From sequence record PP496440.1: 64,000 nt of DNA. One strand, 5' to 3'. Below the pieces are notes generated by a model. It saw only the letters and a list, made by a program, of their open reading frames with translations. It did no database searches and was not told the origin of the DNA. Positions 25,135 to 45,978 of the stretch are shown here, in pieces. The position numbers were made by a program, and so were the translations under genes. How positions within the stretch are numbered: the first letter of the stretch is position 1; every line of letters starts with the position of its first letter.

Positions 25135-25958
25135 TAGTCTGTCCTCTTGATGTTGCCGGGTAGGGTGTAGGACCACGGCTTGACGTAATCTGCCGGGCGG
25201 GTGTAGCCTATCAGGTCGGTACCTTCGTACGGGCCGTGCTTCCACGGATCGGTAATCTCTGCGCGTTCAAACCCGATGGACTCGTACAGCTTGATCGCAC
25301 CTTCGTTGTCCGGATCCACGTTGAGATGGTGTGGCAGTCCTTGGGTCAGTTCCCAAGACAGCAGGAAGTCCAGCATGCCGCTGGCGACACCGCGACGGCG
25401 GTAGTCTGGATCAACACTGATCTCCTTGACGAAGCACGCATCCACCTTCTCGCTGTCCTCGTCTTCCTTGAACATCACAACGTCCATCAGTCCGACGACC
25501 TTGTTGTGCGCGGTAACTGATACCCGTATCTCTTCCTGATCCGGTATATCACCGCTCCAGCCATTCCATCTGGCCATGGTCACGGTGTACAGATTGTGTT
25601 GCCCGTCGTGCTTGGGACTGTGCACCTGATGCAGTGCCCGTGCATTCTTCAACTCCATCTTGTCGCCGGGCTTGATGACCGGGAATTCCAGATGCTTGAT
25701 TTCCTTTTCAAGCATGATACCAATCTCGGAGTCTTTCGCTTTCTTGTCTTTGATGGTGGCTCGGTACACTGTGTCTGTGTCCGTGTTGTAAACATCCACC
25801 TTATCCGTCATCACCGTAATAGACGGCACAGCGGACCAGATGTACTCTTTGCAATGAGCTTTATCCGGGAATGCGAAGCCAACGGACTCGCCGTCTACAA
25901 TGACCAGCCACGGGCAATGGCCGGGATGCGGAAACCGAAGGATCTTTTGTGTGGGCAT
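25134..25958 (-). CDS. GNAT (RimI-like) acetyltransferase with N-terminal extension
   Basis: ISVDPDYRRRGVASGML (acetyl-CoA motif A) and NVDPDNEGAIKLYESIGF (motif B). Confidence 0.85.
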   Translation of the reverse strand: MPTQKILRFPHPGHCPWLVIVDGESVGFAFPDKAHCKEYIWSAVPSITVMTDKVDVYNTDTDTVYRATIKDKKAKDSEIGIMLEKEIKHLEFPVIKPGDKMELKNARALHQVHSPKHDGQHNLYTVTMARWNGWSGDIPDQEEIRVSVTAHNKVVGLMDVVMFKEDEDSEKVDACFVKEISVDPDYRRRGVASGMLDFLLSWELTQGLPHHLNVDPDNEGAIKLYESIGFERAEITDPWKHGPYEGTDLIGYTRPADYVKPWSYTLPGNIKRTD

Positions 25959-31677: not shown

Positions 31678-33156
31678 ATGAAATCTGTAGCCGTTGACTA
31701 CCAAAAGATAGCCAAGGAATGCCAGTGCACCGAGCTGCCTTCCAAGGTAAGAGTTACTCGTGCACGGGTCTATCCAAACTTGAGGACGTGCCTACTCTTC
31801 CTCAAGTACGATGCCAAAGGTGAACTGGTACAAGCCGAGATCACTGCGCCGTACGACACGTCCACTGAGCCAAAGGTGAGGGTGCTCAAACATCCTGACA
31901 AGAAGTCAGACTTCCTTTCATTATATAGGGCGCTGATCCGCCACCAGATCATACCCGAGTCTATTCCGAAGAAAGGTAACGGGATTGCACCAACGCTGGA
32001 GGTCATCGGCACACTGGTTAGCCTGCTGCCGGAACGGGATGTCGAAACCTTCCGAACCCTTACCCCGGCCATCCAGACTGGCAGCGTTATGTACGTCCCT
32101 CTGGTTACGTCCCGGCCAATGCCCATGGTGCAACACTGGATACCTGTTGACCAGCATTCAGAGCTGGGCATGATCGAGCTGGTCGATACGGATAGCAAGC
32201 CTTTCCTGAATCAGTGGGTCAACAGGTTGAGCAACACCGCCACCGGTTATGTGATCTACACCCCGGAAGGCTCACACGGTCAGGAACTCGCCTGCTTCCG
32301 GGTGCCCAATGTACAAGGGGAGGAACTGTGTGTGGTCAAGAAGGTTGACTTCACCCTGACTGTTGCTCGCACACTCAAGCCGGTACTGACTGTATCCACC
32401 AAGAGTACTCGGGCAGTGTCCCGCATTCCCCTACCCCACTATCTGATGCTGCGCAATCACCACATCAAGGTGGGCACGGTTATTTCCCTGCGTCGTAACG
32501 ACCGAGGTGGGTTGGTGTACCATGAGACGGTGGCCGAGGAAGGCATGACGCCCCTGCCGCTGTGTCCACACTGCCACAGTGGTTCTGTGCTGCGAGGTAG
32601 TAGCAATGACGTGTACTGCAATAACGATTCATGCCGAGGCCTAGCCATCGTGCGACTTCGTTATGTCTTGAACAACAAGCTGGACGTCAAGTACCTGAGC
32701 GACAATAAGGTAACGGCGCTGATCAATGACAAGCAGGACCTGTTCAGCTTGCTTAAGACACCGACGCACCAGTTACGGCATAGACCTGGCTTTGGTGCAC
32801 GTACCGTGGACGCACTGGAGGAGAAGCTTAACACTATTGCCGGTCTTCCACTGCACACACTGGCCGAGATGTCCTGCGCTTTCTACAACGTGGGCGTGCC
32901 CCCACTGGATGAGATGGTGTTCAAGAAGATCTTTTCCGTTATGTCGATTGACTACCTGAAAGCGCTGCCGTCTACCGGCAAGATGTACAGTCAGCTGCTC
33001 GACATCGAAGGTATCCGCAACAACCGCGCAGTGGCTTTCCTTGCTGGCTGGCCTGCATTTCAACAGTGGATGATAGACCTGAACGCTGCCCTACAGTCTC
33101 GCAGCGCAATCTCCACCACGGTAAATAGCCCAAAACAAATTCGAGGTGTTAAATGA
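31678..33156 (+). CDS. NAD-dependent DNA ligase (LigA) paralogue, catalytically degenerate
   Basis: Adenylation-domain remnant (YPNLRT in place of xxKxDG), OB domain, C4 Zn finger CPHC...CNNDSC, HhH motifs; no BRCT; start MKSVAV after GGAG. Confidence 0.75.
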   Translation: MKSVAVDYQKIAKECQCTELPSKVRVTRARVYPNLRTCLLFLKYDAKGELVQAEITAPYDTSTEPKVRVLKHPDKKSDFLSLYRALIRHQIIPESIPKKGNGIAPTLEVIGTLVSLLPERDVETFRTLTPAIQTGSVMYVPLVTSRPMPMVQHWIPVDQHSELGMIELVDTDSKPFLNQWVNRLSNTATGYVIYTPEGSHGQELACFRVPNVQGEELCVVKKVDFTLTVARTLKPVLTVSTKSTRAVSRIPLPHYLMLRNHHIKVGTVISLRRNDRGGLVYHETVAEEGMTPLPLCPHCHSGSVLRGSSNDVYCNNDSCRGLAIVRLRYVLNNKLDVKYLSDNKVTALINDKQDLFSLLKTPTHQLRHRPGFGARTVDALEEKLNTIAGLPLHTLAEMSCAFYNVGVPPLDEMVFKKIFSVMSIDYLKALPSTGKMYSQLLDIEGIRNNRAVAFLAGWPAFQQWMIDLNAALQSRSAISTTVNSPKQIRGVK

Positions 33157-33917
33157 ACGTTCAAAACAGAACTCGTATCGCTGTGCTTGTCGGCGGCGGT
33201 CTGGACTCCCACGCCTACATGGTGTTGAAAGCCGACCAGCCACAGACGGACTTCATTCATGTGGACTACGGCCAGCGGGTTGCAGTAGCCGAGAGAAACG
33301 CCGTGTTGCAAATGGCTGAGAAGCTGGGCATTGCCCGCAGTCGCGTGTACACGCTGATCTGCAACAAGAAGAATCACATGCGCAAGGTCAATGACGGTGT
33401 GGGTGTGTTGTTTGGCACCGGCCCGGTCGAGATGGACAATGCGTTTGTTAAGGGGCGTAACCTGTTCCTGATTCAGAAGGCCATCGAGCTGGGCTACGGT
33501 CACGTGCACTTGACGCTGACCCAAGAGCGTGGCCGGATGTTCCCCGATGCCGATCTGGCATTCGTCCAGCTGGTTGACAACCTGATGCACCGCAGTTATG
33601 ACGTGAGGGTATCCGCCCCCTACATCATGGAAGACAAGCATCGGGTGATGTTCAAGGCGTATCGGCATTGCCCCGAGTTCCTCGATATGTCTTTCACGTG
33701 CTGGGTAGGTCCTTATGTGGAATGTGGCACGTGCCCGCACTGCGTCAAGAAGGAAAAGATTCGAGCCGAGATGATCGTTGAGAAAGCCGACTACGATCTC
33801 AACAAGGATGAACGTGAGGCGCAGTGGAAGCAAGTCAAGGCAGGCTACGGCGACGCGTTGAAGCCCGCTGAGACCATCAACGCGACGGTATCTGTTGCTA
33901 AGGGGGAATTTAAATGA
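33153..33917 (+). CDS. queC: QueC-like PP-loop ATPase A (7-cyano-7-deazaguanine synthase family)
   Basis: VGGGLDS, DYGQR, GRN, FPD, SFTCW...CGTCPHC Zn site. Confidence 0.75.
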   Translation: MNVQNRTRIAVLVGGGLDSHAYMVLKADQPQTDFIHVDYGQRVAVAERNAVLQMAEKLGIARSRVYTLICNKKNHMRKVNDGVGVLFGTGPVEMDNAFVKGRNLFLIQKAIELGYGHVHLTLTQERGRMFPDADLAFVQLVDNLMHRSYDVRVSAPYIMEDKHRVMFKAYRHCPEFLDMSFTCWVGPYVECGTCPHCVKKEKIRAEMIVEKADYDLNKDEREAQWKQVKAGYGDALKPAETINATVSVAKGEFK

Positions 33918-34636
33918 ACAAGTTCTTAGGTTGGTTCAAGCGTCTGCTGGATAAGAAACAAAAGTCAGTCACGATGACGTTGACCGACGCCGAAGGTAAG
34001 TTGGTCACCATTCACATACCGCAAGGTGCGGGTGTCGAATACACGCTCTCGAAGTCGGGCACCCACTTGAACATCTCAGTTAAAGACGACGTGTTCATGT
34101 TGCGCACGAATGGCGCAGGAGGCAACGGAGGTGGCGGTGGCCGTGGAAGTTCCAAACCCGGTCTCAACGGTGGCCCCGGCCATACACCTATCCCCCGGTC
34201 CCCAAGCTTCACGGGCGCTGGTACGCCGAACTACGGTCACGCAGGCGACCCGCCTGTTGGTGCTCAAGCTTCGTTCCCTATCGGCGCCCGAGCAACTGTT
34301 TCTGGTGGTGGGCGCGTTGGTGGCCTGTCAGGTGGAAGCGCAAACGGCACAATGGCTGGTGGTGGAGATGGCTTAGTTCCCTCTCCAATCCGTAGCTCTG
34401 ATCGAGCTTACCTGATTAGAGGTTTGTATTACGTCATCACGACGAAGAAGATAACGGGAGAGCAATACCCGATCCATGAGCTTCTGCATTGGGGTAAGAA
34501 GTCAATCGAACTCATGGGCAAGTTCTCCACCGTCCGAGACGCTATCGACGAACTCAAATTGAAGACGGGTATCCCATTCGAAGACCTGACGGACTATCAG
34601 GTTGATTCCCTTCCCAAACGACTGTGCAAGCCTTGA
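33914..34636 (+). CDS. Gly-rich protein with N-terminal amphipathic helix
   Basis: MNKFLGWFKRLL start; central ~90-aa Gly/Ser/Pro-rich segment; 4-bp overlap with QueC-A. Confidence 0.55.
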   Translation: MNKFLGWFKRLLDKKQKSVTMTLTDAEGKLVTIHIPQGAGVEYTLSKSGTHLNISVKDDVFMLRTNGAGGNGGGGGRGSSKPGLNGGPGHTPIPRSPSFTGAGTPNYGHAGDPPVGAQASFPIGARATVSGGGRVGGLSGGSANGTMAGGGDGLVPSPIRSSDRAYLIRGLYYVITTKKITGEQYPIHELLHWGKKSIELMGKFSTVRDAIDELKLKTGIPFEDLTDYQVDSLPKRLCKP

Positions 34637-34674
34637 TCGGGTAAATGGCCCGTAACTAATCCGGAGACACCAGC

Positions 34675-35493
34675 ATGACCACTGCGCCCCCAAAGATTAT
34701 CGTTGCATTCAGCGCCGGTACAGATTCAACTACAGCGGCCTACTACTATCGCAAGCTCGGCTATCAGGTAACGCTGGCCGTGTTCGATGACGGCGCATGC
34801 AACGATCCACTTGGCCCTCTGTACGATCCGAACAAGCCGAAGGACTTGACCAACTTCTCGGATGAGTTCTACGATTACGTACGGATTCACCAAGAGCACA
34901 CGGAAGGCCATCTTCAGTTCGACTTCGTGGAGATTCGTTATCCGCAACTCGCATTGCTGGAAGCCAACAAGACAGCCAAGCCCGGTCGGGACAATGCAGC
35001 AGCAGCAGAGGCTGACGGCTTGGGCTTCTGGGTCGGCTTCAAGGGCCTGATGGCAATGTTGCTGATGAGCCACGGCGCCGCCAATGGTTACGAGGCAGTA
35101 GTCTTCGGCCACATGCCGTACAACAACCATTACGAAGATGAGCTGCCCCAGAACTTCGAGCTGCTGCGTCAGTACATGGTTACGGCCTATGGCAGCCGAG
35201 TGGAAATTCCTCAGATCTACCACCCATTCTATCGACCGAATTTCGATACCAAGGAAAAGGTTATTGAGCTGGCGCAGGCAATCGGCGTGCCCTTGCGAGA
35301 TACCTATTCGTGCCGCCGAGGTGAAGTAGAAACCCGAGGTATCCTCCTGCCACTTCTGCGTGGCGGTAACTCCAACTACGTGAGCCCCACCTACCGTTGG
35401 AAGCATTGTGGTACGTGTGAGAACTGTGTCGAACGCAAGCGAGCCTTCGCGGCGCTGGGCATGAAAGATCCTGCCCCTTATATGGAACATTGA
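34675..35493 (+). CDS. queC: QueC-like PP-loop ATPase B
   Basis: FSAGTDST, TKEKVIELAQAIGVPLRDTYSC, HCGTCENCVERKRAF...DP..Y (typical QueC C-terminus). Confidence 0.8.
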   Translation: MTTAPPKIIVAFSAGTDSTTAAYYYRKLGYQVTLAVFDDGACNDPLGPLYDPNKPKDLTNFSDEFYDYVRIHQEHTEGHLQFDFVEIRYPQLALLEANKTAKPGRDNAAAAEADGLGFWVGFKGLMAMLLMSHGAANGYEAVVFGHMPYNNHYEDELPQNFELLRQYMVTAYGSRVEIPQIYHPFYRPNFDTKEKVIELAQAIGVPLRDTYSCRRGEVETRGILLPLLRGGNSNYVSPTYRWKHCGTCENCVERKRAFAALGMKDPAPYMEH

Positions 35494-35494
35494 T

Positions 35495-36511
35495 ATGGCC
35501 CTTTCAATCTGGCCGCTGACCGAAGGTGAACTCGGTCAGGGCCTCGTCAACGAACTGAATCGTACCAGCAAGGCGCTGGTGAACCGGAGTATGTGGTCTT
35601 TGCCATTGCTCCGGCGTTTGTTTTATCGGCGCACCGAGATTGGTGTCCCGGAGCTACTCCACGTCTGTACCAGCATTCATCGGGGCAAGACTTACTTCTG
35701 CCTGTTGGTGAACTTCCGAGATGTGGTGATGGGCAACCCCGAGCAATACGGATGGGACCTAGCTGGCCGGTGGTTGTTCTACGATGTGGATCTGCTGGAT
35801 ACCCCGGAGTTTAAACAGGTAAACGCGGCTATTCGTAAGGTGGCTACGGTCAACACGGTTACCTACGGTCAAGCATTCGTTCCGGATGAAGGTGGTATGG
35901 GGGAGGAGCACTGGATCAAGAAACTGAAAGGTAACTACCGCCCCCACATCTTCGGCGAAAAGTCAAAACAGGTTATCGTCAGTCAGACCTGCGGACACGC
36001 GGCTACTCACGTTCTGACCGAGGCAGTGATGTCATTCGGTATCCAGCGCGCTGAGAGATTTCTCGCGGAAGGTCAGTCGGATGTCATGCCGGAGTTGTAT
36101 GACCTACCCATGCAGCTAGCCGGTCTAGGCTCGATCCCTGGAACCCGGATTGGCACCGTGTCGCTCACCTGCCGGGATACCCGTGCGCTGATCGGTACCC
36201 TGTCGTTCTACGTTGTGGCAGGCTTGGGTCACAGTGATATCTTGTATATGCACGAGATGCTGATTGATCCGGATCCGAAGTGGAAGCCTCTATCGGTGGC
36301 CGTCAACTTGCACATTCAGGCAATCATGTATGTGCGCTATCTAAACAGCCGATCTGATCGGGCTTCGGACTTGGTTATCAACCTCGGATTCAACTTGGAC
36401 GAGAAGTACAACACATACAAAGAGGTGTTCCGTCCGAACAAGTCCGAAATGGAAATCTATACCGGCATGCACACCGAGCCCGGCGTCCCACTGTCCTGTT
36501 TCAAGGGGTAA
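35495..36511 (+). CDS. FemABX/ATE-like GNAT-fold transferase A
   Basis: C-terminal DPDPKWKPLSVAVNLHIQAI...INLGFN...YKEVFRP matches the ATE1/Bpt pattern (DP...SLG...I...YLG...YK..YRP). Confidence 0.55.
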   Translation: MALSIWPLTEGELGQGLVNELNRTSKALVNRSMWSLPLLRRLFYRRTEIGVPELLHVCTSIHRGKTYFCLLVNFRDVVMGNPEQYGWDLAGRWLFYDVDLLDTPEFKQVNAAIRKVATVNTVTYGQAFVPDEGGMGEEHWIKKLKGNYRPHIFGEKSKQVIVSQTCGHAATHVLTEAVMSFGIQRAERFLAEGQSDVMPELYDLPMQLAGLGSIPGTRIGTVSLTCRDTRALIGTLSFYVVAGLGHSDILYMHEMLIDPDPKWKPLSVAVNLHIQAIMYVRYLNSRSDRASDLVINLGFNLDEKYNTYKEVFRPNKSEMEIYTGMHTEPGVPLSCFKG

Positions 36512-36514
36512 GAC

Positions 36515-37516
36515 ATGTACACTCCGTATTCCCAAAACAGTCTGATGCAATCGATCCCGTTGGATGACCAAGGTACATTCGCCCATCCGCCGTATACGAT
36601 GGAAGGAGAGTTAACCGACGTGTGGACGAATCCAAACCTATATGGGTTCGTCAGCCTGTTGAACGGCCAGAGCAATAGCCGGGCCTATCGAGACTGGATG
36701 ACCACCCACAATCTTCCAGCCCTGTTCCTCGGTCCGCACCATGAAGACAACTTCTGGTTTGAATTCAGCACTGGTCTTGTCCCCAACTGCACGCTGGACT
36801 ACAACGAGATCAACGTCCAAGGCAACCTGCAGGACTTCCTTGGGAGATTGACGTCATCTCGCCGTCGCTCCGTGCTCAAGGCAAAAGAAACGGATACGAC
36901 GATCCACAAGGCAGGCTCGGTAGCCAACTTCAACCTGTATCATCCGGTAGAGGGTAGGCTGTATAGTCTGACCGTGATTCACGAACGCCGGGTGATGAAA
37001 GACATTTCAGAGTTTATCGAATCTAAACTCTGGAGTATGAAGCATACGCCTACTGACCTCACGTACGGTGCATTCACCACCCTGATGGATTACATCCGGT
37101 TGAAGCAGCGAGATGACACGCCGCTGGGCCACCGGTTGCGCAACGTACAGCTCTTGGTTATCCGAGATGAACGCTCCGGGTTTATCGTGTCGGTACACCT
37201 GGTGGCGATCAACACGTTGAAAGATGATTCCATGAACCCCACCAAGACGTACATGCACTCCTTTGCGCGCATCACTGTTCTCCCTGCACGTATCGCCTTA
37301 CTTGCGTTGATCAAGTCGGTTCAAGAGTTAAACGTCACCAGTCAGTATGCGTCCCGTGCACTGGCGAAGATTGACTATCTTGACGTGAGCAACGTGGTGC
37401 TGTCCGAGCGAGAGCAGTACAAGTCGGACTTCTTCACCGGCAAATGCCAAGTGCGTGCGTGGGCATCCCCGGCGCTGCTGGAACGACAGTTACCTTTCGT
37501 TACGCCGATCCCGTAA
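36515..37516 (+). CDS. FemABX/ATE-like GNAT-fold transferase B
   Basis: LQDFLGRLTSSRRRSVLKA (Acetyltransf_6-type helix) and YLD...QYKSDFF. Confidence 0.5.
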   Translation: MYTPYSQNSLMQSIPLDDQGTFAHPPYTMEGELTDVWTNPNLYGFVSLLNGQSNSRAYRDWMTTHNLPALFLGPHHEDNFWFEFSTGLVPNCTLDYNEINVQGNLQDFLGRLTSSRRRSVLKAKETDTTIHKAGSVANFNLYHPVEGRLYSLTVIHERRVMKDISEFIESKLWSMKHTPTDLTYGAFTTLMDYIRLKQRDDTPLGHRLRNVQLLVIRDERSGFIVSVHLVAINTLKDDSMNPTKTYMHSFARITVLPARIALLALIKSVQELNVTSQYASRALAKIDYLDVSNVVLSEREQYKSDFFTGKCQVRAWASPALLERQLPFVTPIP

Positions 37517-37570
37517 CTCTGTAAATGATGGGAACAGCCCCACCATCACTTCATCTCTAGGGTAGTTCCC

Positions 37571-38623
37571 ATGCAAGACTTCGATAAGATAATGATCGAT
37601 AGTAGTTTGACATCCAATCTGGTGTACGCAGGGTTGGGTAACTTGATCACGCCCCGCGCACTTGACCTGCTGATCGAACATCAGGCTGCACTGGAAAACG
37701 TATACGCCAATCTGGAAACGGCCTATCAGATTACCCCACCCTTCCCTTGTGAAGCTGCATTCAATTCCCCTGACAAAGATCCTGTGCTGGTCGCCGACTA
37801 TCTGAATGCTACTCCCGCCATCCGTTGCGGAGAGCTGGCTGGATTCGAGGCAAAGCCCGGCAGTTACTACCACGCCCCCGCTGCTGGCATTTGCCCGGAA
37901 CATCGCATCGATGTACGAGGTATGTCTTTGCGTGAGTTCGACCACTATCTGGTTGAGCGTAAGGAGGTGTCACGGATCACTACCAATCTGGTGGCCGACA
38001 AGTTCCGCTGTGAGACGCATGTGTACAAAGTGGATGAAGATCATATCCTGATCCATGACGCCGAACGAGTTGGGATCAGCCAGACGGACTTCCGCCGCAT
38101 GTGGGCGCAGACCCGCCGCCGGGAAATCGCTGAAAACTATCTGCAGTACATGCCCATCGAAGATTCCGCCAAGGATGATCAGGTGGTGCGACTGATCAAC
38201 GAAGACGTAGCACGGGTGTTCGCCCAGAACGTCGACTACGACCGCATGATTCCGCCCGAGCTGATCTTCGATGGTCAGGGCAAGCCGGTGCTGACCGTGC
38301 TGAAAGATTGCAACGCCAAGGTATTGGGCATTGGTGTGTACGTCATCTACAAGTCAGCTGACCCAGAGCATGACAGCGAACTGCACTGGCGTGGCGCTTT
38401 CTACGATCACGAAGATCCTCGCGTAGCATCCATGGGCATTGAACACGCTCTGGTTGCCAGCGCACTGCACACAGCGTACGCCTGCAACGCGGTCCTCTAT
38501 CTGACCAAGGCACCTAAGTCCGTGTGCGACGCATGGAAGACGGAAGTGCACCAAGGTTACGGTCTGGTCCGTAATGCGATGCCGGAACTGTCTGACACCC
38601 CTTACATTCTGGCTATCCAGTAA
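37571..38623 (+). CDS. FemABX/ATE-like GNAT-fold transferase C
   Basis: VLGIGVYVIY...AFYDHEDPRVASMGIEHALV...LYLT...CDAWKT, ATE-C-like spacing. Confidence 0.45.
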   Translation: MQDFDKIMIDSSLTSNLVYAGLGNLITPRALDLLIEHQAALENVYANLETAYQITPPFPCEAAFNSPDKDPVLVADYLNATPAIRCGELAGFEAKPGSYYHAPAAGICPEHRIDVRGMSLREFDHYLVERKEVSRITTNLVADKFRCETHVYKVDEDHILIHDAERVGISQTDFRRMWAQTRRREIAENYLQYMPIEDSAKDDQVVRLINEDVARVFAQNVDYDRMIPPELIFDGQGKPVLTVLKDCNAKVLGIGVYVIYKSADPEHDSELHWRGAFYDHEDPRVASMGIEHALVASALHTAYACNAVLYLTKAPKSVCDAWKTEVHQGYGLVRNAMPELSDTPYILAIQ

Positions 38624-38656
38624 ATAGCCGGTAACTCCATCCATTGAGGTACTTCC

Positions 38657-40741
38657 ATGAAATCCGTGAACCCCATCTTCAAGCACGTTCCCCAGTTCGA
38701 CTGGCCTGTCATCCCGCGTGCACAGTGGGAAGAGATCATCAAAGGCAAAGAGCATGTGATGTTCGACTCCTTCTCGCAGCTCGCTCAGGTGCTGGCTATC
38801 CCGGTGAGCAGTTACCAGTTCTACTTCGAAGATGGGTCCACGTTGTTCGCCGGTCCCGAAGCAACCTTCACCGCCGCGCCGTACCCGCTGTATCAGGACC
38901 TTGAATTCGTCCTGACCCCTGACGAGACGTTGGTGCCGGGTCTTGCACTGGATACCAAACCGTGGGGCCTGTACACCGACGAATGGGTGGACAACTACGA
39001 AGGTGCGGACAAGGAAGACATCGGCAACAAGACCGGGTTCGAATTCATTCCGCTGTCGGACGCCTTGAAACTGGTGGTCCTCAACACGGAGACCATGCAG
39101 CTCCAGTACACTGCAATCGAGAGCTTCACGTACGACGGCGTGACTTACGTATACCTGCTGGCTGATGGCGTGTGCTGGGTACTGGCGGGCAAGTCAGGTG
39201 GTCTGGTTGCCAGCGAGCATGACAAAGGTGCGGCGTTCATCATGGTGTCCCATCCCGAGTTCGCCGGGTGCAGCGTAGACAACATGTATCCAAGTGAGTT
39301 CGGTGAAGCGGAAGCGACGTTCTACGTTCAAGACGAGGAACACAACTACCTGGACGCGGCTAACCGCATCTTCGAAGAAGCCAAGGACGTAGGCGCGGGC
39401 ACATTCCTGACCATTGAGACCGGGGATGGACTGCCGACCGCGCTGGCGTACAACCTGCGGTACAGTGATGTGGCCCACGTTAACCTGCCGATGCACAACA
39501 TCCACCAGTTCACTTCTCTGCACGTACGACTGGGTGAGACTCCTAACTTTTCCGAGGCCCCGGAAGCGTGCCGCATGAAAGAGGTTATGGAGTATCTGGC
39601 GGACCCTGAGTCCCCGGTAGATCATTACTGGTCGGCCATCATGGTACTGGAGAAGAACTTCCCCGGTTTCGCCGACGCCCTGAAAGACTCCAGTGTCCCG
39701 ACCCGTGACATCGTGCACTCCAAACAGGCGTTCAGCTTGGAGATCGATCGCCAGTTCGGCAAGGAAGTGGCAAGCAAGATCGGGCTGAACACTGGCGTAT
39801 TCGCTCAAGTGAAAGACCGTGATGAATGGCTGGTACGCAAACACGAGTTCCCTACCGATAAGGTGGCCGTCAAGTACAACACCAAACACTTCATCGGAAT
39901 CTTCGATAAGGACGAGGTATCGAATTCCATCAACATGTGGCTGGCCGGTCAACCCGGAGAGTCGCTGATGATCGAAGAGTACTTCGGTGAGGGCAATCAG
40001 GAATTCAACCTGTGCTATGTGATCAACGAAGAGTTCGTGCAGCCGACGCTGTTCCTGTGCGAAGTCAACAAGATCCTAGGTAATGACACCGGCGGCAAAG
40101 GTGGCAACACGCTGGCCTGCCATGATGCTCGTATTAACAAGTACCCTGAGTTCTTCGAGCCGGTCAATGCTGCGCTTGCTAACCTGCATGAGCACGTGGA
40201 AGGTGTGAAGGGCTGGGTTGACCTGAGCTTCATGGTCCGCGACGGAATCCCTTACTTCACAGAGTGGTGCATTCGAATTGGCTGCTCCAACAACGCCACC
40301 ATCGTGCGCCAGATGGAGACCCCGCTCGACGTTCTGCTGACCAACGTGGTTAACAAGGTGCATACCGAGCTGTCTTGGAAGCACTCCATGTCTGTCAGCG
40401 TGGACATCTACAGCATGCCGCTGTCCGCAGGCAATGATGCCAACATGCAGTTCACCGAGTCGCTGACCACGCCGGTCGAGATGGTGTCCCCGCTCAATCT
40501 GGAACTGGCGGCGGAGAGTTTCTTCGACCCGATTGATTCGGCCTGGAACGCGGTGTACGACGGCTACATTGTCGAGGCGTACAACCGATATGGCACCGTC
40601 TCGGGGTATTCCACCAACTGGAACTTCGCCTGCAATGCGGCGTACAATCACTTGAAAGATCAGTCGGTGTTGTACGGGGCATACCGCGAAGCGCCTGCCC
40701 ACCACGACCCACTGACTCTGTTCCCTTTCCTCAAGGCGTAA
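38657..40741 (+). CDS. two-domain protein with C-terminal PurD (GARS)-like ATP-grasp ligase
   Basis: LEIDRQFGKEVASKIGLNT, VAVK, LMIEEYFGEGNQEF, NKILGNDTGGKGG, MVRDGIPYFTEWCIRIG parallel PurD motifs; N-terminal ~290 aa unrecognised. Confidence 0.7.
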   Translation: MKSVNPIFKHVPQFDWPVIPRAQWEEIIKGKEHVMFDSFSQLAQVLAIPVSSYQFYFEDGSTLFAGPEATFTAAPYPLYQDLEFVLTPDETLVPGLALDTKPWGLYTDEWVDNYEGADKEDIGNKTGFEFIPLSDALKLVVLNTETMQLQYTAIESFTYDGVTYVYLLADGVCWVLAGKSGGLVASEHDKGAAFIMVSHPEFAGCSVDNMYPSEFGEAEATFYVQDEEHNYLDAANRIFEEAKDVGAGTFLTIETGDGLPTALAYNLRYSDVAHVNLPMHNIHQFTSLHVRLGETPNFSEAPEACRMKEVMEYLADPESPVDHYWSAIMVLEKNFPGFADALKDSSVPTRDIVHSKQAFSLEIDRQFGKEVASKIGLNTGVFAQVKDRDEWLVRKHEFPTDKVAVKYNTKHFIGIFDKDEVSNSINMWLAGQPGESLMIEEYFGEGNQEFNLCYVINEEFVQPTLFLCEVNKILGNDTGGKGGNTLACHDARINKYPEFFEPVNAALANLHEHVEGVKGWVDLSFMVRDGIPYFTEWCIRIGCSNNATIVRQMETPLDVLLTNVVNKVHTELSWKHSMSVSVDIYSMPLSAGNDANMQFTESLTTPVEMVSPLNLELAAESFFDPIDSAWNAVYDGYIVEAYNRYGTVSGYSTNWNFACNAAYNHLKDQSVLYGAYREAPAHHDPLTLFPFLKA

Positions 40742-40744
40742 TCC

Positions 40745-41908
40745 ATGAGCACTCCATTCCAAGAGTTCACCCTAGAAGGGTGGATTCGCTACATGAGAGA
40801 TGAAAGCATCATCTGGCGCGCGTACGCTGATGGTCATCCGGATAAGGTCGAGTTCAGCCCGGAGTGGCGTGACGAGATGTATCGGTTGATGGTGCAGTTC
40901 AAAGATCTGCTGCCGATGTCGTTTTCCAATCCGGTGTACGGCTTCACTGAAGGTTGGCTGGAAGGGCTCGGACTCCAGCCCTTTTATGGCGATGATCCGT
41001 TCAATCCGATGGTGCAACCGCTTAGCCACCCTCTGGTGCATGTGGGGCTTCCGTTTACTCTGAGCGAGCTGACGGCGGGCGTATGGGACTGTCAGTCCCT
41101 GAGCGCTCACCTGGAGCGTCCGCTGCTGGTCGATACATTCGAACCGATCCCAGTGCCATCTATTAGCCTGGACGCTTACAAAGCCGTCCTGACCGTACGG
41201 GACCGGGAAGAGATCGTGATGAGTGCGGGAACCCCGGTGAACTACTTCCTCTGGTTGAATAGTCCGATCACCGAACTCAAAGACGACTTCGACGTTTATC
41301 TGGCCAGCCTGACCAAGAAGCGCCGCTACAAAGTGAAGCAGGCACTGGCGACAGTGGGCACCGAAGAGAACCCGGCTATCAGCGTCAGTACTGGATCTCG
41401 TTTCGGCGAAGGGTTGTTGTCCGATCAGGTGAACAGCATCCTCGCGACTTTCGAAGATCCGGTGGACATCGAGTGCATGCTTCTTCAGCTGCTGTTCGGG
41501 GTGGCAACCTGCAATACCCATCCGCATCTTGTCGATCTGGTTTGTGCAGACCATCAGTTGGGGATCTTCATCAGGCGCAACGGCCACACGATGAATTTCC
41601 TCTACAACCGTGACCCGGACAACCGCGCTGACTCAGGCATCAACCTGCTGACCCAGTACGTGCGCCATCTGCACATGAACCGCCCGGAAGGTGTGATGTA
41701 CGTGGACCCGACATGTCGATATCGGCCTGACGAGGACAGTATGAACACCTACAAGCGGGTGATCACCAACGAGAACCGGTATCACCCAATGCCGTTCGTC
41801 TCGGCTGACCCTGCGCATATCGAAGGTGTGATTACCCCGGCGTTCATTGCAGGTCATTGGCAGATGTCGGCGTCCAATGGCCCGGCCAATCCTGAGATGA
41901 TGGAGTAA
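40745..41908 (+). CDS. FemABX/ATE-like GNAT-fold transferase D
   Basis: FDVYLASLTKKRRYKVKQAL, DSGINLLTQYV...YVDP...TYKR. Confidence 0.55.
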   Translation: MSTPFQEFTLEGWIRYMRDESIIWRAYADGHPDKVEFSPEWRDEMYRLMVQFKDLLPMSFSNPVYGFTEGWLEGLGLQPFYGDDPFNPMVQPLSHPLVHVGLPFTLSELTAGVWDCQSLSAHLERPLLVDTFEPIPVPSISLDAYKAVLTVRDREEIVMSAGTPVNYFLWLNSPITELKDDFDVYLASLTKKRRYKVKQALATVGTEENPAISVSTGSRFGEGLLSDQVNSILATFEDPVDIECMLLQLLFGVATCNTHPHLVDLVCADHQLGIFIRRNGHTMNFLYNRDPDNRADSGINLLTQYVRHLHMNRPEGVMYVDPTCRYRPDEDSMNTYKRVITNENRYHPMPFVSADPAHIEGVITPAFIAGHWQMSASNGPANPEMME

Positions 41909-41910
41909 CC

Positions 41911-42858
41911 ATGGCAAAGCACAAGGTCAAAAGGTTGGAAATCAACCACATCTACGACTTCTACCCGTTGTATCAGGTGATGTACGGGCGTGGCATGGAG
42001 ACCAAAGCGTTCGAGGTCTCCAAGTTCGCCAAGATGGTGCTGGACTTCGAAGCATCAACCAGTACTCGCCGGAAGTGGGACGTGCTGGAACCTTTCAGCG
42101 GTATCAGCGAGCATGAACACTTCTTCGCTGCTACTGGCCTGAACATCGAGCACTACACCGGCATGGACATCGTGGTTCCAGATGGGGCCAAAAACGTCAT
42201 TCAAGGTGACATCATCACCGACACCCTTCCGTTTCACGTCAACGCGGTGTTCGCCTTCTACTACAGCTTGCAGAATGTACGGGACGCCAAGACTGGCATG
42301 CACACGCGGGAAAAGCTGGTGGAGTTCTTCGACAACATCCTCGGCCATCTGCAAGTCAATGCGAACAAGAGCCGTATGCCCGCAGTGTTCGCTTTCCACC
42401 TTGACCAGCCTGAAGACCCTAATTACTATCTGACGTCCCGTGCCGACGTTGGAGGTGAACAGTCATGGACCGCACCCGCGTGTGGTCTGCTGGGGCAGTG
42501 GGTCAAGTGCAAGCCTACTGATACTCTGGAAGTGAAGTGCAATCTGGACACCTGGTACAACCGTGTGCAGTGCACCGCGTACGATCAGGCGGAGGATATC
42601 CAGATTCTGGTAAATGGGCGAGTAGTGGCTACCGTTGAGATCGAACAGCCGTTCACCCATCGGGTCTGGACCGAGCATGAGGTGATCGATATCCTGCGGG
42701 GTCTGGACTACAATCTGCACTTCCACATGTACAACGGCACCATCTCCAATTACGACTTCTTGATGACCCGTTTGGAAGACAAGCCCGTTCCCGGCGATGA
42801 AGAGGCTAATACTAATCAGATGACAACTGATATGCTGGTTGTCGTTAATCCGAGGTAA
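41911..42858 (+). CDS. class I SAM-dependent methyltransferase-like protein 1
   Basis: DVLEPFSG (motif I variant), TGMDI, VIQGDI, NAVFAFYYSL. Confidence 0.6.
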   Translation: MAKHKVKRLEINHIYDFYPLYQVMYGRGMETKAFEVSKFAKMVLDFEASTSTRRKWDVLEPFSGISEHEHFFAATGLNIEHYTGMDIVVPDGAKNVIQGDIITDTLPFHVNAVFAFYYSLQNVRDAKTGMHTREKLVEFFDNILGHLQVNANKSRMPAVFAFHLDQPEDPNYYLTSRADVGGEQSWTAPACGLLGQWVKCKPTDTLEVKCNLDTWYNRVQCTAYDQAEDIQILVNGRVVATVEIEQPFTHRVWTEHEVIDILRGLDYNLHFHMYNGTISNYDFLMTRLEDKPVPGDEEANTNQMTTDMLVVVNPR

Positions 42859-42860
42859 GA

Positions 42861-43778
42861 ATGGCTAAGCCCAAGATCCCTACACGAACCATCCCCACGT
42901 TGTACCAAGACTGGGGATTGTACAGCGCCATCTGCGAACTGCCGCAGGAGACGATGCTGATGATGTCGCGCTTCGTGGCAGACCGGACTATAGAGCATGC
43001 TAATAGGCATGACATAGATCGTGTGTCGATCATGGAACCTTTCAGTGGTCCTATCCCGTATTACGAACCTGATATCGACAGTTTCCTTACTAGAGCTGGC
43101 ATAGGTTTAGACACGTATGATCATGTGGAATACCTAGATCACGGTGAGCTGACCAAAAAGAACAATATCATCATCGGGGACATCACCACCATAGATCTTA
43201 AGCAAAAGTACGATGTCATCTACGGTAGTTACGGTAGCTTGGCCTGCCTGTTGCTGGATCAGACGCATAACAAAGCGTACGAGAAATCTCACGCGGCGTT
43301 GGTCAACATTCGCGAGCACCTGAAACCCGGCGGCATCTTCGTGCTAAACGCCAATGGGTCAAGCGAGAGTCTGCTGAATAACCTGTTGAACTCTGATGAG
43401 CCGGATCAAGAGATTCGCGTCCGTCCGGGATCGCAGTTAGGTAAGGCGTTCCGAATCAAACCAGACAGTAACGCGCTGCTTCGCTTCACCTATCATGTGG
43501 AGTACGACCGGCGCACCACCTGCACCATGTGCCACTACAGCGATATGGTGCTGTCTGTAAATGGAGTTGACATCCAGCGCTGGGAGGTGGAATCCCCGAC
43601 GTATCTTGCGCCGCTGGATGAACCCGAACTAATTCGAATGGCAGGTATGGCTGGTTTCAATCTGGACAACACTGAGTTCTACGGATTGGACACCACCGGT
43701 TATCCTGCCTTCTTCAAAATGGATACGGTCTGCGACGGGTCATGGTCACCCGCCGAGTTCGTAGTCTTTCGCACCTAA
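42861..43778 (+). CDS. class I SAM-dependent methyltransferase 2 (N-methyltransferase-like)
   Basis: IMEPFSG, IIGDITTIDLKQKYDVI, GSL, REHLKPGGIFVLN. Confidence 0.8.
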   Translation: MAKPKIPTRTIPTLYQDWGLYSAICELPQETMLMMSRFVADRTIEHANRHDIDRVSIMEPFSGPIPYYEPDIDSFLTRAGIGLDTYDHVEYLDHGELTKKNNIIIGDITTIDLKQKYDVIYGSYGSLACLLLDQTHNKAYEKSHAALVNIREHLKPGGIFVLNANGSSESLLNNLLNSDEPDQEIRVRPGSQLGKAFRIKPDSNALLRFTYHVEYDRRTTCTMCHYSDMVLSVNGVDIQRWEVESPTYLAPLDEPELIRMAGMAGFNLDNTEFYGLDTTGYPAFFKMDTVCDGSWSPAEFVVFRT

Positions 43779-43788
43779 CGAGGTTCCT

Positions 43789-44994
43789 ATGAGCGTTATC
43801 ATCCCCACCGTAGCGATGGAGAGTGGTCAGCCAGACATGATCATTCCGGGTTGTGCGACACCTACCCCGGTCAAGTCTTCCAAGAAGCTGTACGAACGTG
43901 AAGACTTGATGGCGTACGACAGCGAGTCGGAGCATTGGCAGAAGCAGCTGGCCCGCCGCTACGCTCACCATGGTGAGATGGTCGGTGTGTTGAACAACGT
44001 CGAGGTGGTGCCGGAAGCCACCTATCAGAACTTCGACATGAAGATCACCCCGTACACCGCGCAGTTGATGGACCAGAACGACCCCAACTGCCCGATCCGT
44101 CTGCAGTACATGCCGACCAACAAAGAGCTGGAGTCGATTCAGCGTGAAGAGACCATGCACAACGAGCTGGGCGAGGAAGAGGACACCATCCCCGGTACCT
44201 CGGTCGTGCACCGCTACCCGCGTCGCGTCTTGTTCCTGACCACTACCCAATGCGCCAGCTTCTGCCGTTACTGCACCCGTGCACGCATCGTCTCCCACGG
44301 CGGCGAAGCGGCGATCACCAAGAAGCACCTTGACGCCAGCATCGACTACATCGCTGGGAACAAGGACATCGAAGACGTGCTGCTGTCCGGCGGTGACCCG
44401 TTCATCCTGCCAGACAACAAGCTCGACGAGATTCTCGGTCGTATCCGCGCCGAGGCACCTCACGTTCGCTTCCTGCGTATCGGTAGCCGACTGCCGGTAC
44501 AGATGCCGACCCGTATCACTCCAGAGCTGTGCGAGATTCTGGAACGCCACAACGTCAACATGGTCAACATCCATGTGAACCATCCGAAAGAAGTGACCCC
44601 TCTGCTGGCCTCCCGGATGAAGATGTTGCGCAAAGCGGGAGTCATGCTGGGCAATCAGGCGGTCCTGCTGAAAGGCGTGAACGACTCCATCGAGGTGATG
44701 ACCGAGCTGTGCTTGCGCATGGTCGAGATGGGTGTGCGTCCGTACTACGTCTACTCCAACGATCCGGTGGCCCAGGCCGCACACTTCACCGTGTCGCTGA
44801 AAGAGATGCTGAATATCAACGAGGGTATGCGTGGCTTCCTGTCTGGCCCGGCTATGCCAACCTTCGTGGTAGACGGCGTGGGTGGCTTGGGCAAGATGCC
44901 GGTGCAGAAAGAGTACGTCGGCTTCGATAAGAACGGCGGTATCTTCGCCCAGAACTTCGAAGGGAAAACGGCCCGCATGCCCCATCTGGAATAA
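43789..44994 (+). CDS. kamA: lysine 2,3-aminomutase (KamA family radical SAM/PLP enzyme)
   Basis: HRYPRRVL, CASFCRYCTR (CxxxCxxC), LSGGDP, RIGSR, HVNHPKE, NQAVLLKGVND, RPYY, FVVDGVGGLGKMP (PLP Lys), NFEG. Confidence 0.93.
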   Translation: MSVIIPTVAMESGQPDMIIPGCATPTPVKSSKKLYEREDLMAYDSESEHWQKQLARRYAHHGEMVGVLNNVEVVPEATYQNFDMKITPYTAQLMDQNDPNCPIRLQYMPTNKELESIQREETMHNELGEEEDTIPGTSVVHRYPRRVLFLTTTQCASFCRYCTRARIVSHGGEAAITKKHLDASIDYIAGNKDIEDVLLSGGDPFILPDNKLDEILGRIRAEAPHVRFLRIGSRLPVQMPTRITPELCEILERHNVNMVNIHVNHPKEVTPLLASRMKMLRKAGVMLGNQAVLLKGVNDSIEVMTELCLRMVEMGVRPYYVYSNDPVAQAAHFTVSLKEMLNINEGMRGFLSGPAMPTFVVDGVGGLGKMPVQKEYVGFDKNGGIFAQNFEGKTARMPHLE

Positions 44995-45145
44995 GCGTTC
45001 CCAGACACTCCCTAGTTCCATTGTACAAGCTTCAAATGCCCCATTTGCGCTAGGTCCTGTAAATGGGGTTGCTTATCAGCGTTGCAATGTGTTACGCTGG
45101 ATTGGACCCATTTTATTCCGATAACCGAAACCCCGAGGTATCACC

Positions 45146-45577
45146 ATGAGCTTCACAGTAACCGTAGCTGCACAGACCATCGCTGCCCCTGAGTCGCTGG
45201 GTAGCCCGAAAGGCATCAGCGTCCTCGAAGCCAACGAAGGCTTTGCTGTCATCGAATTCCAACGTCCTCGCGCCTCGAAGCGTGACCAGATTGCCGTCCC
45301 TCGCGTCCAGATCCTTTCCCTGAGCCACGGCAGCGCCGACGGCGACAGCGGTTACCTGATCGCTCAAGGCATGGCCGGTGTGGCCGACGAATTCGAAGCC
45401 GCAAGCTTCACCATCGAAGGCAACGTTGCCACGTTCGTGACCGCTGAAGGCGCCACTATCGAAACCGACGCACGTCTGACCCGTATCCTCGCTTACGGCG
45501 TGGAAGAGGGCGAAAACAGCCTGCTGGGTAAGCCGGAAAAGAAAGTAAAACCGAAAGCAAGCACCAAGAAGAAGTAA
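45146..45577 (+). CDS. hypothetical highly expressed protein with Lys-rich tail (143 aa)
   Basis: GAGG SD, strongly biased codons, own terminator. Confidence 0.7.
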   Translation: MSFTVTVAAQTIAAPESLGSPKGISVLEANEGFAVIEFQRPRASKRDQIAVPRVQILSLSHGSADGDSGYLIAQGMAGVADEFEAASFTIEGNVATFVTAEGATIETDARLTRILAYGVEEGENSLLGKPEKKVKPKASTKKK

Positions 45578-45606
45578 TCAACACGGCCCGCGCCGGTTGA
45601 ACTAAG

Positions 45607-45638
45607 AAAAAGCCCCTTCCGTTTGGTTGGGGCTTTTT
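45607..45638 (+). terminator. intrinsic terminator
   Basis: AAAAAGCCCC...GGGGCTTTTT. Confidence 0.8.
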
Positions 45639-45657
45639 CGTTATACCGAGGTGTCCC

Positions 45658-45978
45658 ATGGCTAAAGACAGATTCCTGATCTACTCCAAAAACTGCTTAG
45701 GGTGTAAACACCTCGTTGATGGAGCCAAGAAGACCTACACTGCGTGTCACTACAGTGAAGGCAACGAACGCTGCCCCGCGCAGTACGTCCAGATTATTAC
45801 GGGTGTGGATATCCATGCCTTGGCTACTGAGTTGGCAGACGCCATCAGGGCTAACAATTCCAAGAAGTACGATCGGGTGAATGCCAAGATCGGTAAATTG
45901 GACACTGTGATTGCCAGTAGTGTGAAGCTGGCCGCAGACAACCTAATAGCAGGGGCCGGTGATGGCGAAGGTAAATAG
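45658..45978 (+). CDS. hypothetical Cys-containing protein (106 aa)
   Basis: GAGG SD; CLGCKH...CH...C; overlaps the topoisomerase start. Confidence 0.6.
   Translation: MAKDRFLIYSKNCLGCKHLVDGAKKTYTACHYSEGNERCPAQYVQIITGVDIHALATELADAIRANNSKKYDRVNAKIGKLDTVIASSVKLAADNLIAGAGDGEGK

Follow-up and report, generated by a model that had tools for sequence, protein, structure and literature searches.

What do twelve closely spaced genes of a large Pseudomonas phage build together, and onto which acceptor? The genes lie in a 64,000-nucleotide stretch of DNA (hereafter the window) that comes from Pseudomonas phage vB_PpuM-KoPa-5 (PP496440.1; the region is 100% identical, and a window coordinate is the record coordinate minus 124,000), a lytic jumbo myovirus of 201,088 bp with Pseudomonas putida as its host and part of the Estonian CEPEST collection (PMC7616413). 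An earlier reading of the letters alone (the original prediction) had proposed a system that makes a methylated, beta-lysine-containing adduct of several amino acids, had set it apart from the 7-deazaguanine pathway of phage DNA modification, and had left the acceptor open. The separation from that pathway does not hold, and the choice of acceptor has narrowed: phage DNA, via a 7-deazaguanine base, is now clearly favoured because FolE, QueE and a TGT/DpdA-family protein are encoded in the same genome and because of the gene neighbourhood on a related contig, L011. We put the probability that the operon product is a decorated 7-deazaguanine base in phage DNA at roughly 0.6.

The open reading frame (ORF) list gives 12 plus-strand genes between 31678 and 44994, about 13 kb, and the GenBank record has the same 12 coding sequences as KoPa5_00187 to KoPa5_00198, here called O1 to O12:

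31678-33156 (ORF from 31636), plus strand: O1, KoPa5_00187, 492 amino acids (aa); LigA-like OB fold, Cys4 zinc finger and helix-hairpin-helix (HhH), with an N-terminal part of about 200 aa without assignment
33153-33917, plus strand: O2, KoPa5_00188, 254 aa; QueC-like PP-loop ATPase
33914-34636, plus strand: O3, KoPa5_00189, 240 aa; glycine-rich, low-complexity protein, its gene lying between the two QueC-like genes with a 4-nt overlap
34675-35493, plus strand: O4, KoPa5_00190, 272 aa; divergent QueC-like PP-loop enzyme (Pfam QueC 2.8e-12)
35495-36511, plus strand: O5, KoPa5_00191, 338 aa; candidate of the GCN5-related N-acetyltransferase (GNAT)/Fem-like type
36515-37516, plus strand: O6, KoPa5_00192, 333 aa; LTSSRRRSVLKA and Tyr/Phe-Lys motifs
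37571-38623, plus strand: O7, KoPa5_00193, 350 aa; invariant C-terminal Trp-Lys
38657-40741, plus strand: O8, KoPa5_00194, 694 aa; N-terminal domain (about 1-226) without assignment, then a PurD-like ATP-grasp
40745-41908, plus strand: O9, KoPa5_00195, 387 aa; predicted Fem-type double-GNAT transferase, the signature gene of the module
41911-42858, plus strand: O10, KoPa5_00196, 315 aa; predicted class I S-adenosylmethionine (SAM) methyltransferase fold
42861-43778, plus strand: O11, KoPa5_00197, 305 aa; paralogue of O10
43789-44994, plus strand: O12, KoPa5_00198, 401 aa; KamA-family radical SAM/pyridoxal phosphate (PLP) 2,3-aminomutase

Two junctions are 4-nt overlaps, others are gaps of 1, 3, 3, 2, 2 and 10 nt, and three intergenic gaps are wider (38, 54 and 33 nt); every junction that the original prediction had quoted for a tight same-strand cluster is exact in the ORF list. 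The conserved synteny that it proposed to look for is also there. Eight sister phages of the G3 cluster carry the whole region at 87.5-99.9% nucleotide identity with the same 12 annotated genes, and gene order is conserved in independent metagenomic contigs at a protein identity of 24-50%. The genes are therefore real and under selection.

Phage 7-deazaguanine systems consist of FolE-QueD-QueE-QueC-DpdA, with tailoring by Gat-QueC, QueF, DpdM, DpdN and DpdL (PMC6884629, PMC10516641), and in the viruses studied so far the synthesis genes always accompany a DpdA, which places the base in DNA (PMC10516641). In KoPa-5, FolE is KoPa5_00235 (Pfam GTP_cyclohydroI 3.8e-39, 134 bits against a cut-off of 27) and QueE is KoPa5_00231 (phrog_2076, 'QueE-like radical SAM domain', 2.6e-41; Pfam Fer4_12 1.6e-6). 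Both lie outside the window, as does a gene recorded as encoding a hypothetical protein:

PP496440.1 80008-81609 (L003:30008-31609), minus strand: KoPa5_00103, annotated start 81378, in a 533-aa ORF that reaches a GTG at 81609

Its product matches Pfam TGT at 32.6 bits (gathering score 26.3) and the archaeal enzyme structure ArcTGT (1iq8) at E 0.0023, with DSGGFQ, LDIP, CxCxxC and HN aligned, and we regard it as a putative TGT/DpdA-family protein, DNA being assumed as the substrate. The annotated start is probably too short, because the 77 extra residues are homologous to the N terminus of the DpdA-like protein of L011. Among the five genetic features by which membership of the 7-deazaguanine systems was judged, four are credited to KoPa-5, QueD being the exception and O2 and O4 scoring below the QueC equivalog cut-offs; QueD is presumably supplied by the host. 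Two further genes were considered and set aside: KoPa5_00233, between QueE and FolE, is a sliding clamp and not a DpdA, and KoPa5_00234 (129 aa), a QueD or DpdL candidate on account of an IxxxHVH motif, found no support and no PTPS or PDB match.

Several observations surround the DpdA-like gene. In KoPa-5 and in L011 (6457-8094) its product has a Lys/Arg-rich C-terminal tail of about 60-80 residues that is not in the ArcTGT match; such tails may serve in nucleic acid binding or packaging and do not distinguish DNA from RNA. A small Cys-containing protein with a very weak SWIM-like match adjoins it in KoPa-5 (L003:29584-30096, minus strand), and a homologue in L011 (11163-11675; 40% over 62 aa) adjoins the O9-like gene; this protein may be an unrecognised component of the system. 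Jumbo phages of Xanthomonas, Erwinia, Achromobacter and Burkholderia share the DpdA-like protein and have neither O8 nor KamA. A possible accessory gene of the operon, judged by sequence, lies 6 kb upstream of it:

25134-25958, minus strand: KoPa5_00175, GNAT of 274 aa (Pfam Acetyltransf_1 1.2e-13), 41% over 54 aa to the GNAT encoded between the DpdA-like and ATP-grasp genes of L011

DNA of the G3 jumbo phages was poorly recovered with a standard phage DNA kit, and other columns were needed (PMC7616413). This fits unusual DNA chemistry, and many other causes are possible.

The operon is not confined to KoPa-5 and its sisters. A core module (QueC-like pair, ATP-grasp, O9-like and O10-like genes) occurs in at least six other large-phage lineages, among them the following:

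Vibrio coralliilyticus phages GR7B and GR11A: O1-like, a 335-aa gene, canonical QueC, O2-like, a 340-aa gene, O9-like, O8-like, KamA, GNAT
L011 (ENA contig, 238.6 kb): Gat-QueC and, after an interval, FolE, DpdA-like (31% to KoPa5_00103), GNAT, PurD-like ATP-grasp, O9-like, these being consecutive from FolE to O9-like
L017 (NCBI assembly contig, 167 kb): O2-like, O4-like, X, O9-like, PurD-like, O10-like, with a QueE-like gene nearby
L018 (ENA contig, 182.5 kb): Gat-QueC and, after an interval, O9-like, PurD-like
L022 (Logan contig, 5.6 kb): O4-like::O5-like fusion, O8-like, O10-like, O9-like
L023 (Logan contig, 22.9 kb): UvrD helicase, O2-like, O4-like, X, PurD-like, O9-like, O10-like

Comparison of these orders gives a conserved core of the QueC-like pair, the PurD-like ATP-grasp and the O9-like gene, usually with an O10-like gene. 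The Vibrio phages carry a shorter operon, opened as in KoPa-5 by an O1-like gene, at the same site between helicase and topoisomerase II, and they also encode TGT, FolE and a radical SAM gene; in four lineages the operon is housed in the replication gene block. From this gene content the core module appears to belong to large phages that make 7-deazaguanines. Because FolE, QueE and the TGT/DpdA-family protein are co-encoded and the module keeps such company elsewhere, we read the O genes as an elaboration of the known pathway. KoPa-5 has the largest version seen, adding O1, O3, O6, O7, O11 and KamA to the core, with O1 and KamA shared by the Vibrio phages only. The KamA-bearing megaphages LR756500 and LR756501, considered as further carriers, have no other operon gene near KamA.

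Both genes that the original prediction had called QueC belong to the QueC family by Pfam. O2 (Pfam QueC 6.9e-19; TIGR00364 6e-17, under the equivalog cut-off) has GGGLDS, DYGQ(x)5E, KGRN, FPDA and C(x)7CxxCxxC, to be compared with SGGxDS, YxQxHxxE, VPxRN, YPDC and C(x)8CxxCxxC in the canonical signature (PMC13329287). The Tyr-x-Gln, Arg-Asn and (Phe)Pro-Asp elements are retained, as is the zinc site with one residue fewer between Cys 1 and Cys 2, and by alignment O2 retains most QueC substrate-pocket residues; orthologues occur in L017, L023 and the Vibrio phages. O4, with an orthologue of 50% identity in L023, keeps the SAGTDS P-loop and the zinc motif and has lost YxQxHxxE, VPxRN and YPDC, family-specific motifs standing in their place, so that its alignment is that of a remodelled substrate pocket. 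Both proteins pass the Pfam QueC gathering score and both fall below the NCBIfam equivalog cut-offs. The Vibrio-phage gene G7_118, an O4 orthologue by BLAST, is a canonical QueC on alignment, and the true O4 type is absent there. O5 is probably a GNAT/Fem-like partner of O4: in L022 a 492-aa protein fuses an N-terminal QueC domain (8.8e-14) to an O5-like C-terminal part, and hhalign aligns O5 with the O9 family at 30% (E 5.7e-4, colinear across 147 columns), O5 itself having no direct match in hidden Markov model (HMM) or PDB-sequence searches.

The PurD-like ATP-grasp of the original prediction is recognisable in O8 through TIGR00877 (purD; 7.2e-7, residues 354-586, 28.4 bits against a cut-off of 288). 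Matches to GARS_A (E 0.087, 13.1 bits against a cut-off of 27) and to PDB 2xcl (E 0.039) are fainter. Stand-alone relatives of 458-470 aa in L011, L017, L018 and L023 match GARS_A/GARS_C, and homology to PurD is likely because the matches are consistent in O8 and these four relatives. O8 itself is not a PurD; its sequence suggests a PurD-like ATP-grasp amide ligase. In the alignment with 2xcl, TEW(C/M)xRxGCSNN stands opposite iEfNaRfGDPE of PurD with the Glu retained, and in L011, aligned by eye, the segment reads LEFTMRYGRPT, with Thr instead of Asn. Full-length relatives of O8 are extremely rare (3 clusters among 5.8 billion proteins), and both metagenomic contigs with such a relative retain the gene order of KoPa-5. 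Scans of IMG/VR with O8, an O8 alignment and an O9 alignment found no relatives, and a scan of JGI metagenomes gave two short contigs only.

Sequence searches of Pfam, PHROGs, NCBIfam and the PDB gave no match to O9. Exhaustive searching with HMMER yielded 93 relatives; among 82 of them, five match Pfam Acetyltransf_6 and two FemAB_like, and O9 itself matches neither. Modelled with AlphaFold2 from the alignment of its relatives (predicted local distance difference test, pLDDT, 87.7; predicted template modelling score, pTM, 0.88), O9 has a double-GNAT fold. The best Foldseek match in the PDB is Sbb17/Sba18 with streptothrisamine (1.8e-7); alanyl-phosphatidylglycerol synthase, lysyl-phosphatidylglycerol synthase/MprF and FemX were also found, and seven of the top ten PDB matches are aminoacyl-tRNA-dependent double-GNAT chains (E 1.8e-7 to 7e-5, template modelling (TM) scores 0.35-0.48). 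In Fem-type enzymes a catalytic Lys follows an aromatic residue in the second GNAT domain (FemX Lys305, DhpH-C Lys329; PMC12945691). Y336-K337 of O9 lies near the position of FemX K305 and DhpH-C F328-K329, as matched by position without superposition, and across the 82 relatives K337 is conserved in 80, Y336 in 64 and R194 in 81. The link of O9 to the Fem families is thus transitive and structural and not a direct sequence match, and the model predicts that O9 probably depends on aminoacyl-tRNA.

The original prediction had counted four ATE/Fem-like transferases. O9 stands as such; O6 and O5 are weaker candidates and O7 contributes a motif only. O6 is probably a distant relative of the O9 family, as weakly indicated by hhalign (62%, E 7.4e-5) and by a match of the O9-family HMM to its L010 orthologue (1.7e-4 in a database of about 100 proteins). 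O7, with an orthologue at the same position in L010, has no HMM, PDB or hhalign support for a Fem/ATE assignment. All three of O5 (Tyr-Lys), O6 and O7 have an aromatic-Lys motif about 30 residues before the C terminus. A first all-versus-all hhalign run with shallow profiles linked only O10 to O11 and O4 to QueC, and PDB sequence profile searches with O5, O7, O9, O10 and O11 returned nothing meaningful, O9 and O10 being resolved by structure prediction and Foldseek.

The two methyltransferases fared better, the class I fold being borne out by the O10 model (AlphaFold2; pLDDT 82, pTM 0.82) and by the paralogy of O10 and O11 (hhalign 98.2%, E 3.5e-14). Foldseek places O10 beside CypM (4.7e-9), CalS10 with SAM bound, CcbJ and glycine N-methyltransferase, with 56 PDB matches at E <= 0.001, so that the model is nearest to N-methyltransferases of small molecules and peptides and SAM binding is predicted. 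The paralogues share ILEPFSG, the motif I variant being (I/V)LE(P/A)F(S/A)G; Pfam matches are below threshold, and that of O11 to Methyltransf_31 is weak (0.03). O10 orthologues occur in L009, L017, L022 and L023. The assignment of O12 to KamA is likewise upheld, since it passes the subfamily cut-off (TIGR00238, 275.1 bits against 199.2) and keeps the lysine-type residues. Compared with 2A5H (2e-79), it retains CxxxCxxC (CASFCRYC), the PLP lysine of GGLGK and an Asp at both the D293 and the D330 position. In lysine 2,3-aminomutase both aspartates hold the epsilon-ammonium group of lysine; in glutamate 2,3-aminomutase the Asp293 and Asp330 of the Clostridium lysine enzyme are reportedly replaced by Lys and Asn, as Ruzicka and Frey are said to have described in 2007. 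By sequence, O12 is probably a lysine 2,3-aminomutase that supplies beta-lysine. Arginine is a possible substrate as well, because the equivalog cut-offs of the AblA (2.8e-93), glutamate (2e-90), arginine (4e-87) and EpmB (TIGR03821, 7e-67) models are all unmet. O12 is 51% identical to the product of the Vibrio-phage gene at the same operon position.

O1, the 'dead ligase' of the original prediction, indeed has ligase-like domains without KxDG. Its profile matches structures of NAD+-dependent DNA ligases (8ak4, 7.6e-10; 1v9p; 2owo) within the OB fold, the zinc finger and the start of the HhH, and TIGR00575 (1.1e-6) at residues 295-395. KxDG is missing from O1 and its Vibrio-phage homologues and present in the true LigA of KoPa-5. 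Because the motif is absent and the ligase match begins only at the OB fold, O1 is not a ligase; it is probably a ligase-derived DNA-binding protein or subunit. O3 has no family match in Pfam, PHROGs or NCBIfam, shows the lowest conservation in the operon (70% identity to phage Peetri, the others having 82-92%), and is confined to the KoPa-5 lineage, being absent from all other lineages examined.

We propose a 7-deazaguanine DNA-modification system in which the operon forms the decorating half. The phage FolE and QueE, assigned by homology, together with QueD from the host, would make 7-carboxy-7-deazaguanine (CDG), and the TGT/DpdA-family enzyme would swap guanine in DNA for a 7-deazaguanine, as in other phages. 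O2 would adenylate the C7 carboxylate of CDG and form an amide, whether from ammonia or straight from an amino compound; O4 together with O5, as well as O8, would activate more carboxylates for additional amide bonds. O9, and probably O6 and O5, would transfer aminoacyl groups from aminoacyl-tRNA to free amines on the growing side chain, with O12 providing beta-lysine as a building block and O10 and O11 N-methylating leftover amines. O1 might hold part of this machinery on DNA via its LigA-type domains. Virion DNA would then contain a 7-deazaguanine that is bulky, cationic and peptide-like, an obstacle to restriction and to other defences directed at DNA. The idea of a methylated, beta-lysine-containing adduct of several amino acids, which goes back to the original prediction, we judge reasonable given the enzyme classes that found support. 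In its full detail, namely a DNA 7-deazaguanine with a short methylated peptide-like chain that contains beta-lysine and is partly built by Fem-type enzymes from aminoacyl-tRNA, the proposal is tentative, and we would sooner expect some element of it to differ.

A number of points weigh against this interpretation. What the product is, and which acceptor carries it, are both inferred. QueD was not found in KoPa-5: neither of the two small ORFs lying between QueE and FolE matches PTPS/QueD, and credible ORFs in all frames contain no CxxxHGH-type motif. By their scores neither QueC-like protein is canonical, O8 scores beneath the curated cut-offs, and the Asn of its Mg-binding E-x-N is replaced by Cys or Met. 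The best match of KoPa5_00103 is a tRNA enzyme, ArcTGT, and tblastn against characterised DpdA3 phages detected no similarity. The DpdA-like, FolE and QueE genes lie 25-75 kb from the operon. The Foldseek TM-scores are modest (0.37-0.65), the structures nearest to O9 and O10 are natural-product enzymes, and O3 and O7 are left unexplained.

The natural-product resemblance raises the alternative that survives best, in which the operon would yield, during infection, an unattached small molecule, either a 7-deazapurine or one of peptidyl-nucleoside-like type, that is N-methylated, contains beta-lysine and acts on host translation or defence. KamA provides beta-lysine in streptothricin-type pathways, homologues of FolE, QueD, QueE and QueC also yield toyocamycin-type antibiotics, and Sbb17/Sba18, nearest to O9 in structure, are of the streptothricin type and bound to streptothrisamine; O10 is closest to natural-product N-methyltransferases, and O1 alone among the operon proteins has a recognisable nucleic-acid-binding domain. 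We nevertheless consider such a product unlikely. A TGT/DpdA-family protein is encoded in KoPa-5, in the Vibrio phages GR7B and GR11A and in L011, there between FolE and the ATP-grasp and O9-like genes (the other contigs were viewed over at most about 20 kb). Furthermore, O1 has the DNA-binding domains of LigA, the operon lies within the replication block in four lineages, and the neighbourhoods showed no gene for an exporter, a phosphoribosyltransferase or self-resistance.

More doubtful still is modification of a virion or host protein, whether by N-terminal deazaguanylation as with Cap9/QatC, by beta-lysylation of the elongation factor P (EF-P) type or by aminoacylation from aminoacyl-tRNA, with O3 as a conceivable substrate. 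QueC-fold enzymes do perform protein carboxydeazaguanylation (PMC13329287), O4 has a faint QatC match (0.035), the KamA relative EpmB, whose model TIGR03821 O12 matches at 7e-67, feeds EF-P beta-lysylation, and ATE_C weakly matches protein X of L017 (0.0072). O3, placed between both QueC-like genes, is however missing from every other module-bearing lineage, and the module accompanies FolE, QueE and DpdA genes rather than defence or translation genes. Neighbourhood annotation and Pfam matches show no EpmA/PoxA-like partner, and no search was aimed at CD-NTase or QatB; O2 keeps the small-molecule pocket of QueC, although Cap9 does likewise.

The amino-acid adducts of 7-deazaguanine that we know of, glutamyl-queuosine and the preQ0-lysine intermediate of ArcS/RaSEA, are confined to tRNA. 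That the TGT-family enzyme, whose best solved-structure match is an archaeosine tRNA-guanine transglycosylase, and the operon place an aminoacylated 7-deazaguanine in RNA such as host tRNA is nonetheless highly improbable, given that the phage has no credible tRNA genes, that phage TGT homologues studied to date all act on DNA (PMC10516641) and that O1 is similar to a duplex-DNA-binding module.

The surroundings of the operon add some observations on its expression and context. A GGAG lies 8 nt 5' of the ATG of O1 at 31678, no promoter-like sites above chance occur inside the operon and terminator-like sites are fewer than expected; from the sequence, co-transcription of the 12 genes is likely. 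Upstream lies a divergent UvrD-type helicase gene, and downstream a hairpin, two small genes and topoisomerase II:

45038-45069, plus strand: hairpin 3' of O12 with a stem of 12 bp (-18.5 kcal/mol, z -2.75), after which comes UUGCUUAUC; a possible operon terminator

A consensus terminator scan did not pick up the hairpin, and an Rfam scan of the window gave no match, preQ1 riboswitch included. The two small genes (45146-45978; one of 143 aa, then one of 106 aa that has several cysteines) occupy the same site before topoisomerase II in the Vibrio phages at 35-38% identity and have no family match. Elsewhere in the window, about 1 kb (20785-21793; record 144785-145792) has no annotated gene and holds 26-nt direct repeats (21282-21307 and 21320-21345, 38 nt apart, 77% identity). 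The sole tRNA call by ARAGORN in the genome, tRNA-Gly(GCC) at 8051-8131 of PP496440.1, falls inside KoPa5_00006 and is probably a false positive.

Other contigs broaden the picture. In L011 (724-4728) and L018 (6335-9859) the module is joined by genes for a GFO/IDH/MocA-type oxidoreductase, a spermidine-synthase-like protein and a PIG-L-like deacetylase, and by a gene that looks glycosyltransferase-like by eye and has no family match, which suggests further decorations such as sugars or aminopropyl groups. L017 (3901-6825) encodes a fusion of a family A DNA polymerase with a uracil-DNA glycosylase domain, an architecture reportedly tied in one 2026 paper to phages with T-modified genomes, and this phage may carry more than one DNA modification. 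A more distant, bacterial O9 relative (L024:2512-4160; Acetyltransf_6 4.6e-4) lies beside a small GNAT gene between ftsH and ftsK on a contig that looks chromosomal; the O9 family is thus not phage-restricted, and its pairing with a GNAT is also met in bacteria.

How does the proposed system compare with those already known? To our knowledge, all eight 7-deazaguanine derivatives of viral DNA have small C7 substituents. They are dPreQ0, dADG, dG+, dPreQ1, mdPreQ1, fdPreQ1, dDG and dCDG (PMC6884629, PMC10516641). Like their producers, KoPa-5 is a large lytic phage with FolE, QueE, QueC-family and TGT/DpdA proteins and tailoring atop this common core. Unlike them, it adds a PurD-like ATP-grasp, one or more Fem-type transferases, a remodelled second PP-loop enzyme and KamA. 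Its two methyltransferase-fold proteins are unrelated to DpdM by name or match, its QueC-like proteins are non-canonical and no QueD was found, and tblastn with its DpdA-like protein reaches no further than a small jumbo-phage group.

Hypermodification of thymidine offers a parallel in which a multi-gene phage cluster also attaches amino acids or amines to a base of DNA that has already been replicated; in phage M6 a KamA-like radical SAM enzyme reportedly takes part. The products of thymidine hypermodification, which uses a 5-hmdU kinase, aGPT-Pplase and PLP and radical SAM enzymes, are Nalpha-GlyT, 5-NedU, putrescinyl-T and alpha-dapT (PMC11472151, PMC13458397). Its target, however, is the C5-methyl group of a pyrimidine and its chemistry that of pyrophosphate, whereas amides in KoPa-5 would come from adenylation, acyl-phosphate or aminoacyl-tRNA chemistry; neither 5-HMUDK nor aGPT-Pplase is named in the KoPa-5 annotation or matched by Pfam or PHROGs in the genes scanned.

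We know of no FemABX-type enzyme that acts on a nucleobase or on DNA. The GNAT-fold aminoacyl-tRNA-dependent transferases include FemX, MprF and the aminoacyl-phosphatidylglycerol synthases, PacB, DhpH, VlmA and BD-12 Orf11/Sba18 (PMC12945691). O9 shares their double-GNAT fold and the conserved aromatic-Lys near the C terminus and differs in having no significant Pfam Fem match and in occurring in phages beside 7-deazaguanine genes. Cap9, from the type IV cyclic-oligonucleotide-based anti-phage signalling system (CBASS), and QatC are QueC-fold ligases that couple CDG to a protein N terminus (PMC13329287, PMC13639016). The chemistry proposed for O2 and/or O4 is of this kind, a QueC fold joining the carboxylate of CDG in an amide to an amine that is not ammonia; in contrast to these bacterial defence proteins with CD-NTase or QatB partners, O2 and O4 form a phage-encoded pair whose links are with ATP-grasp, Fem-like and methyltransferase genes and with DpdA. 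AblA/AblB and EpmB resemble O12 in belonging to the KamA family with lysine-type residues, and the Vibrio-phage KamA is followed by a GNAT acetyltransferase as AblA is by AblB. O12 nevertheless falls below both equivalog cut-offs and sits in a phage operon with QueC-like genes, not in an osmolyte or EF-P context.

Full-text searches, which took in a survey of the QueC family, gave no description of the module, a comparative survey of jumbo phages mentioning a plain deazaguanine system only. The original prediction of an undescribed system agrees with this, whereas its independence of known pathways is not supported, the module being best read as an elaboration of a 7-deazaguanine system; the tailoring enzymes of KoPa-5 are, as far as these searches show, unreported for that pathway. 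Cultures exist of KoPa-5 with its host P. putida PaW85/KT2440 and of the Vibrio phages with V. coralliilyticus, which makes the question directly testable.

If our reading is correct, 7-deazaguanine chemistry would extend to amino-acid or peptide-like side chains, and DNA modification would gain three enzyme classes, namely PurD-like ATP-grasp enzymes, remodelled QueC-fold ligases and Fem-type transferases. An adduct this bulky and cationic on a purine would matter for the evasion of restriction and CRISPR and for the nucleases and glycosylases by which defence systems sense modified DNA, as well as for nanopore and single-molecule real-time (SMRT) base-calling of environmental phages and for enzyme tools for DNA labelling. 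In the most far-reaching form of the proposal, with aminoacyl-tRNA as amino-acid donor, DNA modification would draw on aminoacyl-tRNA for the first time, and no purine with a peptide-like decoration would have been seen before in a genome of any kind. An aminoacyl-tRNA-dependent, peptide-like decoration of a DNA base, if confirmed, would be a step new in kind.

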